A model generated the notes under the pieces. The model saw nothing but the letters and a program-made list of their open reading frames with translations. It was not told the origin of the DNA and ran no database searches. Positions 23,753 to 32,000 of a DNA stretch of 32,000 bases are shown here, in pieces. Positions within the stretch are counted from its first letter, which is position 1. Each line of letters begins with the position of its first letter. The translations under genes were made by a program, and so were the position numbers. The stretch comes from Zygophlyctis sp. KS116 (Eukaryota > Fungi > Chytridiomycota). Location: NCBI GenBank assembly GCA_054661495.1, contig BAAFSQ010000052.1, forward strand, positions 1 to 32,000, given 5' to 3'.

Positions 23753-24133
23753 TCAATAACCCAATGGACTATAGTATGCTAGACCCGTAAGATTGTACCT
23801 ATAAATCAGATAAACAATAATCCACGATAAGAATATTATTAAAAATAGGATTGATCCATAGAGTGAAAGCACTTGATCTAATACTTAAAAGAAAATAGTA
23901 CATTGCTTGATATCCTTATTCAAGTTTGGAAAATCTCTAGTGATTGGCGCCAAATATAAATAGTTGATCAACCATATCCAAGGAAGCAGGGCGAATCCCA
24001 GATAAAAATACCGTGTAGCAACTTTTAAGAGTTCGTCTTCTTTGAGATTTAATCTCTTAATTTTTGGAGTAATATTCATCTCCGGCTTTTGGCCCAATAC
24101 GAAGCGGTCTAGTTTTTGTATGAAATTCTGCAT
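23753..24133 (-). CDS. PSENEN: Gamma-secretase subunit PEN-2
   Basis: RYFYLGFALLPWIWLIN, I..Y across a 24-nt intron (23901-23878), a second TM helix, and a C-terminal PLG. Confidence 0.85.
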
Positions 24134-24227
24134 TTAGGAAACACAATGATTAGAAACGATATGATTGGTTATCGAATCTTACACGTTGAAAGTTCGTGTC
24201 ATCGGGAGATTCGCTCACCTTTATGCA

Positions 24228-24274
24228 GATAACTCATGGAATAACTCATTCTGATAATTAATGGGATAACTTAT
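24228..24274. repeat. Four imperfect tandem copies of RATAAYTHAT
   Basis: gataactcat 24228, aataactcat 24240, gataattaat 24253, gataacttat 24265 (spacing 12, 13, 12). Confidence 0.6.
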
Positions 24275-24355
24275 GAAATTCTAATAAGTACTGTCAATAT
24301 TTCATTTATTGATCAGTTCAAATCGCAGTTGATTCCAAGATTCATAAAAAGTTCT

Positions 24356-24880
24356 CTAAATACTAGCACTTTCTTGTTCATAAAGCACAATGTTAAATAT
24401 GCTCAATAATGAGTCAACCATTGCCTTTGAAACCGGGACTGTGACTCCACGGATATTTATGTATGATCCAGAGCTAATCAACCGATCGGTGCTGTGGGCG
24501 CATGCAAGCGGGTCCCTTTCAGCTACTGAAGAAGACTTTCTTTCAGGAACACAACTATCTCCAAACTCCCGCCATGGATTAATTGAAAGGGGAAAATCAA
24601 AATTGCTTGCAATAAGTTCGAATTCGGGAATACCATTCGGCCCAAAACTATCAAAAAACTGATTGATAAAAGAAAGACAGTTTTTGGAGCCATTATTTCC
24701 ATCAGAATAAGCAATTTTGCAAATATCTGTAGCTGACTTAAAGCAATCAGTGTGCGGTTTATCAGTATCAATTGTGCAGCTAAAATCATGGCCATCTGAT
24801 TCTTGGCTAAAAGTCAAGGAAGTAGCAAAATAAGTTGGAAGAAAGCCAACAGAGAGAATTGCAGCGAGAGAGACTTTCAT
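24356..24880 (-). CDS. Small secreted six-cysteine protein, paralog A (174 aa)
   Basis: Signal-peptide-like N-terminus. Six Cys align with paralog B. Intronless. Confidence 0.8.
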   Translation of the reverse strand: MKVSLAAILSVGFLPTYFATSLTFSQESDGHDFSCTIDTDKPHTDCFKSATDICKIAYSDGNNGSKNCLSFINQFFDSFGPNGIPEFELIASNFDFPLSINPWREFGDSCVPERKSSSVAERDPLACAHSTDRLISSGSYINIRGVTVPVSKAMVDSLLSIFNIVLYEQESASI

Positions 24881-25040
24881 TTTTATTTATTTATTGTTTG
24901 CGATCATGATGTCACTAGAAATGCATTTAGATTCAGCGGGACGATCGATATATGCTGTAAATTCAGTTTCTTCTCAGATACCATTGTGTGATTGGATTCT
25001 TCTTTAGATTTGAATATAAGGGAAATGATCAATCTCAAAT
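24808..25040. repeat. 233-bp perfect direct repeat, copy 1 (160 bp upstream + first 73 coding nt)
   Basis: Identical by eye to 25516-25748 (offset 708). Confidence 0.93.
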
Positions 25041-25123
25041 CAAATACATACTTAAATAATTCGTTCAGCGTTACTTTAATCATGAATCGACCTTGCTATG
25101 ATTTACAATCGCTCTTAATGAAA

Positions 25124-25588
25124 TCATTGTTTAACACCAACATAGTGGATAATTGTATTCACTAATTCTCTTGTTACTGGAAGCTTAATGCCTTGTGGAC
25201 TTAAATAGGATTCAGTTTTCAGCAATTTAGTGGTGCTATCACTGCATCCTTGTTCGGTGCCTACTATAGCAACCCCTGATGTAGATTTTCTTCCAGCAAT
25301 ACAATTGTCTCCAAATGCCCGCCATGTGCTGCCAGAACTGAAACTATTGAAAATCTGGTTAATAGAAGAAATGCATTCTTGAGAAGGATTCACTGCTCCA
25401 GAGGATTGTGTCGAGTGAGTGGCTTTACAGGCACCTGCAGCTAAGTTAAAGCAGTTTTGGGCTGGTTTATCACCGATAATCGAACAAGAATATTTGTAAG
25501 ATCCTATAACCTTAATAAAAGTCAAGGAAGTAGCAAAATAAGTTGGAAGAAAGCCAACAGAGAGAATTGCAGCGAGAGAGACTTTCAT
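25124..25588 (-). CDS. Small secreted six-cysteine protein, paralog B (154 aa)
   Basis: Same first 24 aa as paralog A. Shared motifs KP..CF..A...C, C.S.INQ.F.SF, WR.FGD.C...RKS.S. Confidence 0.8.
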   Translation of the reverse strand: MKVSLAAILSVGFLPTYFATSLTFIKVIGSYKYSCSIIGDKPAQNCFNLAAGACKATHSTQSSGAVNPSQECISSINQIFNSFSSGSTWRAFGDNCIAGRKSTSGVAIVGTEQGCSDSTTKLLKTESYLSPQGIKLPVTRELVNTIIHYVGVKQ

Positions 25589-25748
25589 TTTTATTTATTT
25601 ATTGTTTGCGATCATGATGTCACTAGAAATGCATTTAGATTCAGCGGGACGATCGATATATGCTGTAAATTCAGTTTCTTCTCAGATACCATTGTGTGAT
25701 TGGATTCTTCTTTAGATTTGAATATAAGGGAAATGATCAATCTCAAAT
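25516..25748. repeat. 233-bp perfect direct repeat, copy 2
   Basis: Identical by eye to 24808-25040. Confidence 0.93.
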
Positions 25749-25788
25749 ACATACTTTAATCATTAGTGCATCAGAAGCGCGGCCAATA

Positions 25789-26214
25789 TTACAAGTTTAT
25801 AACGACTTTACTCAAGTACAAACCTAGTAAAATTACAATAACTCCTACTCCCCAAACCATCCACTTCTCTTTAATTTTCAATTGACTCTTATACTCTTGT
25901 ACTTGAACTTGTAAATTCCTGAGATTAAATTCCATCATTTCCACTTTAGAATTATAATTTTCCAAAAGACCAACTTGACTTTGCAACTCTTCTTCTTTTT
26001 CTGCATAATTTTTAATTTCCTTTTTCAAGTTTTGTAATTCCTTGAGTGCTTTTGCATAGTCTAGTCCAACATTAACATTCTCACCATGCAACAATGATTC
26101 TCGTGTTTCTTCTTCCGCTATCTGCTCCTTGACCCTGTGAGAGAAATTTGACAGTTCCTTGAGAGCCTTGAATGGAGTAGACACCTTGTTTCTCGACGTT
26201 GAAGGAGTGAGCAT
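25789..26214 (-). CDS. Coiled-coil protein with C-terminal TM helix (tail-anchored); 5' end unresolved
   Basis: Heptad-rich E/K/L/Q stretch followed by WMVWGVGVIVILLGLYL. Upstream exons up to about 26385 are possible but I could not resolve them. Confidence 0.65.
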   Translation of the reverse strand: MLTPSTSRNKVSTPFKALKELSNFSHRVKEQIAEEETRESLLHGENVNVGLDYAKALKELQNLKKEIKNYAEKEEELQSQVGLLENYNSKVEMMEFNLRNLQVQVQEYKSQLKIKEKWMVWGVGVIVILLGLYLSKVVINL

Positions 26215-26430
26215 TGGATTTCTAGTATATTTAACCTAAAGCTTGTAAATTCCCCTAAACTTTGACTGTTCAGACCTAGGAGTCTGCAATGAATGAAATC
26301 TACAAAAGACTCTCTAGACCCCAAAAGCTGGGTGTATCTCTAGGTAATGCAGTATTATTTACTCTAGGTCTTTTTGCATTTGCATTGACTGGAAATTTCT
26401 TGAATTCTTATTTTGAGAAAAAATTAAAAA

Positions 26431-27126
26431 ATGGAAAAGTACAAGAATAGAATTTTAGAGATTTTAAAGTCTCATGATCTGACGATAGTCACTCCTAAAT
26501 ACATTCGTTTAAAATTACAAGAAGAATTTCAAGTGGATTTACTTGAGTTCAAGTCTGAATTAAAATCTTTGATTTCTGAATGTTTGACAATTGTTGACAT
26601 TGATGTAAAGGAAGAACATACTCAAGAGCAGACGCTAGAAGAAGTCATTGGTCCAGACACTGATGTTGTTGATTCTGACGCCAAAAGAACTAAAAGTAGA
26701 AAGAGGGAGACAAGAACCAAGGTAAAAAATACTACTCCAAAAAAGTCTGCAAAGAAAGAGTCTGCAGGAAAACAGTCTTCAGGAAGAAAGGGATTTCAAA
26801 TACCACATTATATTTCAGTAGAATTGGCTGAATTTCTAAATAGGAATACTGCTTCAAGAGCACAAGTTACAAAATTAGTTTGGGATTACATAAAGGAAAA
26901 TAATTTACAAGATCCAAAAGATAAGAGATTTATTGTTCCAGACGAGAAACTTAAAAAGGTACTAAGAAAAGATAGAGTTCAAATGTTTAAAATGACTAAA
27001 ATACTCTCAGATCATATTAAAGAAGCAGCGCAAGAAGAAATTATGGAAACTGTACAAGATTCTTCTCAAGACTCTGAGACTGGTGAACCAAAGCTAAAAA
27101 AAGTTAAAACACTCAAAGAAGAGTAA
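26431..27126 (+). CDS. DEK-C + SWIB domain protein (Uaf30/Tri1/Spp27-like)
   Basis: N-terminal IL...DL..VT.K.IR..L. SWIB motif SRAQVTKLVWDYIKENNLQDPKDKRFIVPDEKL. Confidence 0.88.
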   Translation: MEKYKNRILEILKSHDLTIVTPKYIRLKLQEEFQVDLLEFKSELKSLISECLTIVDIDVKEEHTQEQTLEEVIGPDTDVVDSDAKRTKSRKRETRTKVKNTTPKKSAKKESAGKQSSGRKGFQIPHYISVELAEFLNRNTASRAQVTKLVWDYIKENNLQDPKDKRFIVPDEKLKKVLRKDRVQMFKMTKILSDHIKEAAQEEIMETVQDSSQDSETGEPKLKKVKTLKEE

Positions 27127-27142
27127 GGATCAGGTTTACAAA

Positions 27143-28536
27143 ATGTCTTTGAGACAAGTTCAAGTAAATTTACTACAAGAATAATAAAAAGTGGGATATT
27201 GAGAGTTCATTTGAGTTTCCATCTTCGTCTTCTCTTTTATCTTCGGATCCATTTCTTGAGATTCAAGGTCAAGTCTTAAAACTAGAACAGTATTGTCCGA
27301 AACAAGTGTCAATTTATATCTCAGAATTAACAAGGACTGTAGACTTTAAAAATACTATTCAAGAGTATGAAATAGAATGGAAGTCAAGGTAAAAGTTATA
27401 ACATGGAAATTAGGGAAAATATACTATTGGAAATAGATAAAGTACTAGATCAGATTTCAATTGCATTGGCTAATAGAGAAATTCCGGTTTTGAAAGTCAT
27501 TAATAGAAATGCTGATTCTGGGTTCAAGTTTGAAGATTATGCGATTGTATTGAATATTGGACAATTGAAAATCATGAATATAAGATTTGGAACTCAAAGA
27601 TTTGAAATTTATGTAAATATCTTGAAAGATATACAACAAGGACTAGAGTGTAATGTAACTTCAAAGAAACGGTAAATTTGTCTTCTCAAACTAGAGATTT
27701 ATATTACAAAAATCCAGAATTATATACAAATCAGACAAAAGTAGATGATGCAGTTGAAAATATTGCTTGTTCGTTTGGAGTTCCAAGACGATGCTTAAAT
27801 GTTATTGCAGGTTCAAAAGGTTTGGTTTTTGGTAAACTTTTACTCTGTCTACGATCAGGATCAACATTGGATTGTAGTTTGGCAAATGATCAAGTAAGGT
27901 TTCTTTGTTATGAATTCATAGGGAACTTTGATTCCTGAAGGTTATGAAATTGAATCATTTCGGACATCAGCAAAAGCTGTACTTGTAATCGAAAAAGAAG
28001 CTACATTTTCAAAATTACTAAGCCATAAATCGTGTAATTCTTCTTTTGCTTTTTTAGATTCTTGTATTTTGGTAACTGGGAAAGGGTAAATTGTACTATA
28101 GTTTTAATATGATAGATATCCGGATGTTTCAACACGAATGCTGGTAAAATTGCTCTGTCAATATTTACCAATATATTGTATGATTGATGGTGATCCTCAT
28201 GGATTTCAAATTTATCTAACATACAAATATGGATCAAAATCAATGGCCTTTTCCTCTTCTAGTTTAGCGATCCCTTCGATCATTCTCCTAGGAATATATC
28301 CTTCATCATGGTTTTCTCAATTACAGATTGCATTCAAGGATTTAATCCTATTATCAAGGCATGATGTAAAAAAATGCCATTGCTTGCTACGTAATCCCCA
28401 CGTTTGCCGTGATCAATTGCTCAAGAGAGAAGTAAGCCTATTGATCTTTTACAATTATAAAATCGAAATTCAGGCGATCTCTACGGAGAATCTTGCCGCC
28501 TTTCTCGAAAACCACCTCTCGCCACCAAAGAGATGA
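27143..28536 (+). CDS. SPO11: Spo11 meiotic transesterase (Topo VIA family)
   Basis: KR|DLYY catalytic Tyr, SKGLV.G, VIEKEATF, TGKG|YPD..TR, DGDPHG..I, KIEIQA. Introns 27389-27413, 27672-27694, 27894-27921, 28086-28115. First exon and intron (27164-27191) are tentative. Confidence 0.9.
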
Positions 28537-28587
28537 TCTTCACGCCACGCTCATTGTTCCCTTAAATCTTGATAATATAATCAATAA

Positions 28588-29877
28588 ATGAATCCTGAGA
28601 TTGATCCACTTATCGCCCGAATAGAACTTATTACATATTTGTTGAAGCAATATAACCTCTTAAGAGATACTTCCGCAGTGATACAGAATGATCTTCAAGT
28701 TTTGAATACTTTTGCATTGGCTAAAGATTGGGATAAAGTCAAGTTGGCTCTTGATAAATGGACAGAGAAGCTTAAGGATCCTAACCAAGTTGCAGTTATA
28801 ATCTGCAAATGGAACATTTCGATTGAGGTTGCAGTGGACGGTTCGGACATTGAATTTTTAAAACTATTGCTTCCATTCGTTGGTAAGCATAAGAAATTAA
28901 GAATCAAACTCTCATATATGGCAATCGCTTTAGAAAAGCAAGATCAAACAGTTGTGGAAATGATGTTACGCCATTTACATCATGATAAAGACGATAGCTC
29001 AATTCTAGCTCGTCTTCCAAAAGAAGATCAAAGAGCATATCAAGCATTATTCAATAGATATTGCTGTGTATCAGACAATGATATCATTAAGGAAATCCTA
29101 GAAGATTATAAAAAAACTGACGTTTCAAAAGAAGAAGCATCAATTATTGCTCAAGAGCACAGGCTGGCCATGATCACATATCTATGTCATCATTCAAACA
29201 TTACGATTGCAGAAGATACTGTTTGGAATTGTATTAATAGTGGAAATATTCATATTTCAAAATTATTAGAAAAGTTGAAGGAAATATCTGTTATTGGCTG
29301 GATGGAAACATTTGATTCAGGTGAAAATTCGAGTGCTAGAATGGAATCTGGAGCAAGACCCAATACTCCATTGTACCATATATCAAACAATAAAACTCCC
29401 AAAACCCAGGCTGAAGACGAACAGTTTAATTCTCTTTTAGCATTATATTCTGCATATGGTGGAAATATATCAGGCATTGATCTGGAAACAAAAGAAAAAA
29501 TATCAGTGATGAATCCTCCAGGATCTCCCAGATCACTTTCTGGGTTCCTAAACAGAAAGGGAGCGCCTAAACGGTTTAGAGGTGCATCAGAGATTCCGTC
29601 CGAGGCAGCAGTTAAAATCGTTCAATCAAAACAAGATGATTATTGGACAAAATACTTGTGTGGAGAAATTCAAGATATATCATCTTTACCTTGGATGGAG
29701 CCTTCAAACGATTTCAACGTGAAATTCGATTATAGCGCCAGTGAAGCCAGTCTTCCTCAAGATCCAGAAAATGCAATATTCGAAGGTCTAGCAGGGTTAG
29801 CATCTAGAACAAATTCAGTTCGTCGTATAAGTCGGGACGATTCATCCTTAACAAATCCGCAGATTATAACTCATTAA
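28588..29877 (+). CDS. Hypothetical 429-aa protein, possible degenerate ankyrin-like helical repeats
   Basis: Uninterrupted ORF. AVDGSDIEFLKLLL and IALEKQDQTVVEMML loosely resemble ankyrin repeats. Confidence 0.7.
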   Translation: MNPEIDPLIARIELITYLLKQYNLLRDTSAVIQNDLQVLNTFALAKDWDKVKLALDKWTEKLKDPNQVAVIICKWNISIEVAVDGSDIEFLKLLLPFVGKHKKLRIKLSYMAIALEKQDQTVVEMMLRHLHHDKDDSSILARLPKEDQRAYQALFNRYCCVSDNDIIKEILEDYKKTDVSKEEASIIAQEHRLAMITYLCHHSNITIAEDTVWNCINSGNIHISKLLEKLKEISVIGWMETFDSGENSSARMESGARPNTPLYHISNNKTPKTQAEDEQFNSLLALYSAYGGNISGIDLETKEKISVMNPPGSPRSLSGFLNRKGAPKRFRGASEIPSEAAVKIVQSKQDDYWTKYLCGEIQDISSLPWMEPSNDFNVKFDYSASEASLPQDPENAIFEGLAGLASRTNSVRRISRDDSSLTNPQIITH

Positions 29878-29892
29878 ATTTTTTAGATTGAA

Positions 29893-31507
29893 ATGAAAGC
29901 CAATTATTTGCTAAACTTTAGTTTTCCAAAGAATCCGATTGAGAGCCCAAAAAAGAAGAAGCAATTCACTGCTCAGTTTGATAAGAATGTCTTTATGAAT
30001 GCAAAGTATTTATTTAATGCTCACCTTTTAGTTTTCAGTGGGTGATGCAAGATGCAAAGACTGCTAGTGGATTATTATCTAATCCTGATGCCATTGTGGA
30101 ATGGGGACAAGTTGCTTTTATAATAACTTCAATTACCAATTGCCCAATATGCTTAACTGAACCCACAATACCAAAATGCACCAAATGCGGGCATATTTAT
30201 TGCTGGACATGCATTCTTCAGTATCTAGAAACAAACTATAAGTGTCCGATTTGTTATGAATATGTTTCATCTGAAGATTTAAGAAGCGTCATAGGAAAGC
30301 CAGATGTAAATTATGAGCAAAAACAACTCACAATGAAGCTTTTAAAGAGGAATTCTGTAAGTATATTGTATTTATAATACTTTCAAGACTTCCAATAGGC
30401 TTGCTCTAAAAAATGGTCAATTGTATAGTGAGGAGCTGCCATACTTTGAAGATGAAGAAATTTCACCATTTTCGAGACATTTAATAATTAGAAAGCAAAC
30501 GTTACTGATGCTTATCAATAAAGATAAAGATACTCTCTCAAGTTTCTCAGAGTTATTGAAAATGGAACAAGAGAGCTGGTTGGAAATTCAAGGGTATCTA
30601 CCGGCTGGATTATCAAATGATTTGCCCTTTATAGAAATTGCAATCAAAAAATTAGATGAAAAAATAGAATCTATAAAGAATGAAAAATCGACAGAAAATA
30701 ATCATCGGATGATTTTAGTTCCAGACTATTATTTTTTCATGGATTCTAGGGGTGAACATACGTATTTATCACATTTGGATATCAAAATATTGAAACAAGA
30801 ATTCTGCAATTATTGTGATTTTCCAGAAGACATTCAGGTCCAGATTCTGGCTTTGTCTGATTTGCAACTGGATGAGGTAAGTGGATTCCTTTTTAATGAT
30901 TAAAGGGTTTCCGGAAGCGAATGAAGTATTTAAGTCATCTTCCGTTGAATTGCAGCATTGTAAGGAATAATCTTCTAAAATATAAAGAAGTTGCTTGATA
31001 TTGACTGGGATAGGACAAATTTGGTTACAAAGGAAACCTTGGATATTTTTTCTAGTATTTTTGTTAATTTAATTGAAAGAAGAATTATCAGACAGGAAGC
31101 GTCGCATCTTGAAAATTCAAAAGAAGGAATTTAGAGAATCAAACAGTCTAAACGTTAAAATGAATCTCTCAGAGCAGGCTATCTCAGATCCTCCTCTTCC
31201 AACTCCTGATGACTTTCCTCAAGGCCTAATCAAGCCTTCATCACTTGAAAAGGAATATAATGGACCTTCTTTTGCAAGCATGACCAAAAAGGCTCCCGGC
31301 ACTTTGCCCTTCTCCCCAACAAGGAATTCTAAAGCTCGTTTGATTGTTGATGAGAATGAAAATGAACTTTCAGACTCTTTAGGATGGACTTTGGATCTTG
31401 AAGACATGCTTCTTGAGGGAGAAAATTCTAAAATATCTATTAACGGGAAGAAAAAAACCAAGAAAAAATCTGTTCTTAATAATGGAAGTAGTAGGAGACG
31501 CACTTGA
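29893..31507 (+). CDS. MAG2: RNF10/Mag2-like C3HC4 RING E3 ligase
   Basis: NYLLNF, F.NAN, CPICL..CGHIYCWTCIL.Y..CPIC, YYF, YLSHLPL. Introns 30006-30031, 30357-30387, 30877-30905, 30960-30987, 31055-31079. Confidence 0.88.
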
Positions 31508-31965
31508 AATGGAAAGCGTATGCATTTCAACAGCAGGATCATGGTAATGATTCAGCTTATCATTTCAACACATTTTGCTTGTTTCGGCACAAGCCATCAG
31601 AATCTGATTGATGATTGCTTCGCCAATATGCAAGCCTTGGCTACCAAGTGTTAAATTATTTGGCTAATGTATTTCACACAGGATGAAGACCAAACTATTT
31701 TTGACGAATAACTCAAAGATGATACTATCTTTTTGTTGTGATCTGACTGCTTCAAAAGAAGCTAGAATATATTTTGAATGCTCATAATTAAACGATGATT
31801 TTCAGTTATTGAATATGATTTTGATGTTATTCTATGAAATAAGGCATTACTGATCTCGCTCTCGACGCCGATCATGTTCGGACAACCCATTATAATTAAA
31901 GCCAGCGTATAGTTTCATGGCACTCCAAATAAAATCATCATAAAAAGAAATATCTATTCAAAGCT

Positions 31966-32000
31966 ATGAAAGTGATTGCTCTTCTATATCTATTGACAAG
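31966..32000 (+). CDS. Possible start of a secreted protein cut by the window edge (MKVIALLYLLT..)
   Basis: Signal-peptide-like start, but only 11 codons are visible. Confidence 0.3.
   Translation, partial: MKVIALLYLLT

Follow-up and report, generated by a model that had tools for sequence, protein, structure and literature searches.

Parasite effector and toxin gene families already provide examples of a constant leader paired with a variable mature region. In the conotoxin superfamilies, a conserved signal sequence and a conserved cysteine framework accompany a hypervariable mature peptide; a single signal sequence serves each many-gene superfamily, a pro-region is present and the exons are separated by long introns. 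In the Hessian fly, the SSSGP-1 cluster comprises seven genes in tandem that encode small secreted proteins (Chen et al. 2010, PMC2955719), in which the promoter, untranslated regions, signal-peptide region and introns are conserved and the mature region is highly diversified. The authors of that study propose positive selection combined with concerted homogenisation (PMC2955719).

Here we describe a pair of genes, A and B, in a 32,000-nt window (the whole stretch of DNA that was analysed) from Zygophlyctis sp. KS116, a member of a little-studied group of uncultured freshwater fungi. The closest precedent for this locus is the Hessian-fly SSSGP effector genes. As in that cluster, A and B stand in tandem, and an identical leader (233/233 nt) heads mature parts with 35% amino-acid identity and pS = 0.69; also as in that cluster, the leader appears to be homogenised by exchange rather than held by constraint, judging from variants shared between the copies of a related metagenome contig, L023. 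Unlike the SSSGP cluster, the locus has two genes, no introns and 3' flanks without similarity, and it comes from a fungus-like microbe and an unrelated protein family. Its layout of constant signal, fixed cysteine framework and variable mature part likewise recalls the conotoxins, but the leader stands on two genes only, a pro-region is absent and neither gene has an intron. We read the pair as a compact case in which concerted evolution is confined to a regulatory and secretion module, beside a fast-changing secreted domain. The features of the locus are as follows, in window coordinates.

24356..24880, minus strand: gene A, predicted secreted six-cysteine protein of 174 aa (stop included); ORF, family HMM E = 1.2e-36, a partly circular score because the HMM alignment includes A and B
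24587..24640, minus strand: 18-codon insertion in A, residues 81-98; gap in B
24808..25040, minus strand: repeat copy 1, exact 233-nt repeat that heads predicted gene A
24881..25040, minus strand: non-coding part of copy 1, putative promoter and 5'UTR of A, from its position relative to the ORFs
25041-25045, no strand: duplicated tcaaa, by which copy 1 is five bases longer at its distal edge; exact identity stops here
25046..25067, minus strand: decayed homology past the exact block; partner 25749-25770
25124..25588, minus strand: gene B, predicted secreted six-cysteine protein of 154 aa (stop included); ORF, family HMM E = 2.1e-43, partly circular for the same reason
25408..25531, minus strand: strain-variable patch of B, nt +57 to +180, covering the N-terminal strands and helix 1; from differences to the L024 allele
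25516..25748, minus strand: repeat copy 2, exact 233-nt repeat that heads predicted gene B
25589..25748, minus strand: non-coding part of copy 2, putative promoter and 5'UTR of B, from its position relative to the ORFs

A repeat finder run on the window returned 24808-25040 and 25516-25748 as a 233-nt direct repeat with 100% identity and a spacing of 708 nt, the identity being an assembly-level value that is indistinguishable from about 98-99% with no change to the reading. An exact match of this length is far beyond chance. Each copy consists of 160 nt upstream of the ATG and 73 coding nt (codons 1-24 plus one base). The non-coding 160 nt, which would include the promoter, sit within the 243 nt separating the B stop from the A start in copy 1 and within 200 nt of intergenic DNA in copy 2. 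An Rfam scan of 24000-26300 placed no family in the repeat block, and a plus-strand ORF of 62 aa across the block was judged spurious.

Both edges of the block are sharp. On the coding side, the codon alignment of A and B gives identities per 30 nt of 1.0, 1.0, then 0.57, 0.47 and 0.67 onward, a drop from 100% to 40-80% per 30-nt bin directly after codon 24. On the distal side, exact identity ends at the five extra bases of copy 1, which are missing from both copies in L023, and weaker similarity then continues: the two-member repeat family D4 pairs 25040-25067 with 25743-25770 (28 nt, 86%; 24/28 bases match after the 5-nt indel). Because this decayed homology runs on beyond the exact block, the block appears to have overwritten DNA that was already paralogous. 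The preliminary description of the locus, made from the sequence alone, had reported an identical 233-bp block of 160 non-coding bp and codons 1-24, an abrupt loss of identity just after the likely signal cleavage region and five extra bases in copy 1 at its distal edge. The repeat finder reproduced the first in every detail, the binned identities the second and positions 25041-25045 the third. The genome search with the block that it proposed was also run and found exactly two copies in the whole genome (a 12.7-Mb draft of 1175 contigs).

The two genes are adjacent in tandem on the minus strand, 243 nt apart, and each ORF is a single exon. By BLASTP, their products are 41% identical over 165 columns with an 18-residue gap in B, and outside the shared leader 43/124 amino acids (35%) agree. 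All six cysteines are present in both, together with the short motifs that the preliminary description had listed, and its account of six conserved cysteines, a few shared motifs and an insertion of roughly 18 aa in A agrees with both BLASTP and the alignment. The common N-terminus, inspected by eye, is charged at its beginning and hydrophobic in its core, with small residues near positions 19-21, features from which we infer secretion of A and B; the exact block ends three residues past the probable signal-peptidase site. The 3' flanks of the two genes share no similarity. We rejected an intron within the 54-nt insertion of A: a 28-nt GT..AG segment exists, and its removal breaks the frame that carries a conserved Trp and Cys. 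A sub-threshold Rfam match to Dictyostelium class I RNA, lying antisense inside B (25284-25357, plus strand; E = 0.0057), was taken as chance, its 29.8 bits falling under the gathering score of 41.5.

The mature regions tell of a much older separation than the leader does. Between A and B they have pS = 0.69 (dS about 1.9, saturated) and dN = 0.58, against 0 differences in the leader. In a tree of mature domains, A groups with B and the B orthologues (support 99/94), making A and B the closest paralogs of each other, on branches of 0.79 for A and 0.63 for the B stem; distances among the three B sequences are 0.02-0.08. Because silent sites are saturated and the branches are long, A and B are, on this reading of the sequences, old tandem duplicates far older than the identity of their block. 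Because each is the other's nearest paralog by mature domain, the locus is a tandem pair rather than the product of a leader swap.

A protein search yielded three B-type proteins: P0001, identical to B, on a 763-nt ENA metagenome contig (L053); P0002, 94% identical, on metagenome contig L024 from ERZ28594736; and P0003, 77% identical, on the 15.5-kb metagenome contig L023 from ERZ19571628, the ORFs of the latter two being intact. Protein A had no relatives among JGI metagenome contigs, and a word-index protein search with A met B-type proteins only, so that the A gene of the relative was not found. Contig L023 is collinear with 24995-32000 of the window at 94.7% nucleotide identity (about 5% diverged) and terminates a short way past B. 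The final 55 nt of the contig repeat exactly the stretch that lies 169-115 nt upstream of B on the same contig, and the match is lost at the 56th base. Stopping at a shared 55-mer is how an assembler with k=55 enters a repeat, which places a second copy of the block downstream of B in the relative. Three positions in this 55-nt stretch separate the lineages: the two L023 copies agree on C / A.T, the two window copies on T / T.A. These three sites, within 55 nt of the second copy, constitute the evidence for concerted evolution in the relative.

The amount of change between lineages makes the same point. The B leader differs between the window and L023 at 6/160 upstream and 10/72 coding positions (16/232), changing 6/24 signal-peptide residues, and the leaders of the window paralogs differ at 0/233. 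Independent evolution since the split predicts about 16 differences; 0 were seen (e^-16 by a hand calculation). Because lineage-specific variants are common to both copies, the identity of the block points to repeated gene conversion rather than conservation, and on this evidence from sequence comparison homogenisation acted after the split, in both lineages. The upstream region of B is identical over 245 nt in L024 and at 154/160 positions in L023. The 3.75% divergence of these 160 nt from L023 is somewhat below the silent rate of neighbouring genes (dS 0.05-0.13), which suggests modest constraint on the putative promoter.

Contig L053 equals window positions 24909-25671 and runs from copy 2 through B into copy 1, with the 5-nt indel included. 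Its first 55 nt are its last 55 nt, closing a 708-nt cycle that matches the repeat spacing. It may come from the same population as this assembly, or even from the same data. A possible further reading of the cycle is that the tandem array has more than two units in some strains. For assemblies, the locus is a case in which an exact repeat of 233 nt makes metagenome contigs break or cycle.

Taken together, these data make it likely that A and B are an old tandem pair whose 5' module is kept identical by recurrent non-allelic gene conversion, that is, by concerted evolution. The preliminary description had raised recent gene conversion homogenising an expression and secretion module as one of two possibilities, and the L023 variants, the contrast of 16/232 with 0/233 and the saturation of the mature region all support it. 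The other possibility, leader-cassette swapping across a diversifying family, fared worse. A dedicated system joining one constant module to many payloads, as in conotoxins, would account for the constant leader, the conserved cysteine framework and the variable mature part, and the family is indeed large; yet the leader occurs only twice in the 12.7-Mb genome, a 29-nt core of it has 0 exact matches in JGI metagenome contigs, the protein search met it on B-type proteins only and the other ~38 family matches use different leaders or sit behind LRR exons. With A and B each other's nearest paralogs as well, we regard such a system as highly improbable. Purifying selection alone, keeping the leaders identical without any exchange of sequence, is more improbable still. 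The upstream 160 nt are indeed only 3.75% diverged against a silent dS of about 0.09-0.12, but the signal-peptide part changed at 10/72 nt and 6/24 residues between lineages and is nevertheless identical between paralogs, and three parallel substitutions would be required to explain the lineage-specific variants common to both copies.

Two further explanations concern how often the copies were equalised and whether they were equalised in the cell at all. A single recent replacement or partial re-duplication could have put the promoter and signal peptide of B before A, or the reverse; zero differences in 233 nt fit a very recent event, and just two copies exist. Such an event is nonetheless unlikely, given that L023 also has identical copies with variants of its own, so that homogenisation followed the split in both lineages, and that the decayed D4 homology past the block indicates overwriting of homologous DNA rather than insertion of a new cassette. 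Alternatively, a de Bruijn assembler might have collapsed similar or misplaced copies and used the result twice. In favour of this, the draft genome is in 1175 contigs, the repeat breaks metagenome assemblies or sends them into a cycle, and a short-read assembler may merge near-identical copies into exact ones. We consider an artefact of this kind very unlikely: L053 spans the passage from the 3' flank of B into copy 1 as well as that from copy 2 into B, L024 and L023 independently show the upstream block before B, and L023 has the second copy after B. Moreover, collapse hides a difference of about 1-2% and does not create identity out of the ~50% divergence next door.

Under recurrent gene conversion, A and B would each be a predicted free-standing secreted six-cysteine domain descended from the old tandem duplication, and conversion would be limited to the module that is still homologous, namely the putative promoter and 5'UTR (160 nt) and the signal peptide (24 codons). 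The tract would stop where homology collapses, at the diverged mature region on one side and at the 5-nt indel on the distal side. With mature regions about 50% different in DNA, conversion would be unable to extend further; or selection would act against conversions that replaced a distinct secreted domain. The outcome would be one regulatory and secretion module driving two very different secreted proteins, whose secreted parts would diversify fast on a fixed disulfide scaffold. Both the boundary-setting mechanism and any interaction with other organisms are things that we infer; on the same footing, A and B are marked as candidate interaction proteins, effector-like or acting in recognition.

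We then compared rates of change in B with those of its neighbours. Between the window and L023, the whole gene has dS 0.116, dN 0.128 and dN/dS 1.11, and its mature part dS 0.094 and dN/dS 1.4, with 36 replacement and 8 silent changes; between L024 and L023, the mature part has dS 0.068 and dN/dS 1.69. Neighbouring ORFs in the window-L023 comparison have dS 0.05-0.13 and dN/dS 0.06-0.39. Amino-acid change in B is thus 4-30 times faster than in its neighbours at a normal silent rate, and the replacement-to-silent ratio differs between B and the neighbours with Fisher p = 1.5e-6, whereas a dN/dS above 1 in B is not significant (p = 0.18-0.27). The excess of amino-acid change in the mature region that the preliminary description had named as one of its tests therefore holds relative to the neighbouring genes (Fisher p = 1.5e-6) and does not hold as a dN/dS significantly above 1. 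Relaxed constraint on B might also explain the ratio, in keeping with that non-significant result (p = 0.27). All six cysteines are kept among the B orthologues and all three B ORFs are intact, which diversification on a fixed scaffold seems to fit better than decay.

Variation among B alleles is concentrated at the start of the mature region. Compared with the 94% allele on L024, B has 16 differences, 15/16 of them at +57 to +180 (p = 5e-11) and none in the 245 nt upstream. When changes were polarised with L023, 7/12 window-specific changes in B matched the base of paralog A (5/10 outside the exact block), against 0/4 of the L024-specific changes. This suggests that conversion from A sometimes spills over, patchwise, into the beginning of the mature region. 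For the surplus of A-like states, p ranges from 0.0007 to 0.06 with the chance rate that is assumed, and we treat the surplus as a lead only.

The six-cysteine domain extends well beyond this locus. A tblastn search with B found about 20 paralog loci in the genome, down to 1e-17, and a profile of A, B and the paralogs found at least 40 matches in the genome, mostly at the C-terminus of predicted secreted LRR proteins. Among 1.84 billion proteins, the same profile matched 137 cluster representatives at E <= 0.001; all of the clusters sampled (20/20) came from metagenome or run assemblies and lacked an informative name. The six cysteines and Pro and Trp columns are conserved in the family alignment. 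In 7/10 longer relatives the domain follows Pfam LRR domains, and in this genome it is preceded by LRR exons separated by tiny introns, one intron per LRR. The small C-terminal domain of this secreted, one-repeat-per-exon LRR family is the six-cysteine domain of A and B, in which the signal peptide stands directly before the domain, unlike in the LRR-type members, with no LRRs, no KR site and no GLW.N tail. That an undescribed six-cysteine domain ends dozens of predicted secreted LRR proteins is, to us, more interesting than the repeat itself.

The position of a dibasic site bears on what the domain may do. A KR site lies 13-17 residues before the first Cys in about 19/21 LRR-type or second-domain paralogs, and in the alignment it falls where A and B, which lack both LRRs and KR, have the end of their signal peptide. 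The free domain may be the working product: a Kex2-type protease would cut it from the LRR proteins, and signal peptidase would free it in A and B. As in Kex2-processed fungal secreted precursors (KEPs), the KR site of the LRR-type paralogs suggests release of the domain; having no KR site, A and B are not KEPs themselves. A and B also lack the C-terminal GLW.N tail, and their stand-alone subclade also includes genes from contigs C27 and C93 that have a signal peptide and two domains.

Structure prediction and fold comparison, which the preliminary description had proposed, gave models of both proteins and no fold match in the PDB. The AF2 model of B is confident (pLDDT 81.2, pTM 0.75) and that of A fair (pLDDT 76.7). 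Both chains pass in the same succession from three strands and two helices through a variable loop into two further helices, two short strands and a last helix. The loop holds the 18 residues inserted in A, a region that is mostly unstructured in the model (mean pLDDT 57-60 over residues 81-100). Pfam gave nothing below E = 0.078 for 18 family members. A sequence profile search of the PDB (best E = 0.16), Foldseek against the PDB (best E = 1.1 and 0.9) and VIA-align against 48,161 chains (best Z = 3.5) each found no relative, and in the ESM Atlas comparison TM was at most 0.42 by fold with no match by features, weak or missing matches of this kind having no power to prove a fold new.

A broader account would join these observations: the six-cysteine domain would be a new disulfide fold and the released product of a large secreted LRR repertoire belonging to uncultured freshwater chytrid-like fungi, and the leader would be homogenised for joint production of A and B, which might, for example, target host or partner cells as a pair. 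New alleles would then arise through conversion that leaks into roughly the first 100 nt of the mature region, which would account for the strain-variable patch. We hold this account to be rather unlikely as a whole.

Several observations on the family stand apart from the argument above. A second stand-alone pair lies on C93 (L035, C93:24023-27421, and L045, C93:1-1970), 25 kb apart, with coding DNA 88.9% identical and a 107-nt upstream block 96.3% identical; in one copy, about 207 nt of inserted DNA shift the upstream block, and the copy that lies at the start of the contig contains an in-frame TGA. Six paralogs (L025, L027, L028, L029, L036 and L042) share 110-270 nt at 86-96% identity downstream of the domain stop codon; they are LRR-type and otherwise more diverged than these downstream stretches, which may represent a 3' element common to these genes, a small repeat or additional conversion tracts. 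In P0037, a 238-aa metagenome protein, the six-cysteine domain leads, with a Cys-rich cap and the beginning of plant-type LRRs behind it, so the order of domains is not fixed across the family. P0019, P0024, P0094, P0006 and others lie on JGI/Logan contigs of 1-2 kb as uninterrupted LRR-plus-domain ORFs of 300-620 aa. Because these ORFs are uninterrupted, as against a tiny intron per LRR here, the contigs are probably spliced transcripts, and relatives of the family appear to be expressed.

On either side of the pair stand ordinary eukaryotic housekeeping genes (PEN-2, TTL, SWIB/DEK_C and Spo11). At 23885-24133 on the minus strand, 222 nt downstream of A and in the same orientation, an 82-aa ORF matches the gamma-secretase subunit PEN-2 (E = 9e-10). 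Just upstream of B, a 141-aa ORF (25789-26214, minus strand) has no Pfam match; by eye, it combines a charged, probably helical body with a hydrophobic C-terminal tail, and it is kept in L023 with w = 0.24.
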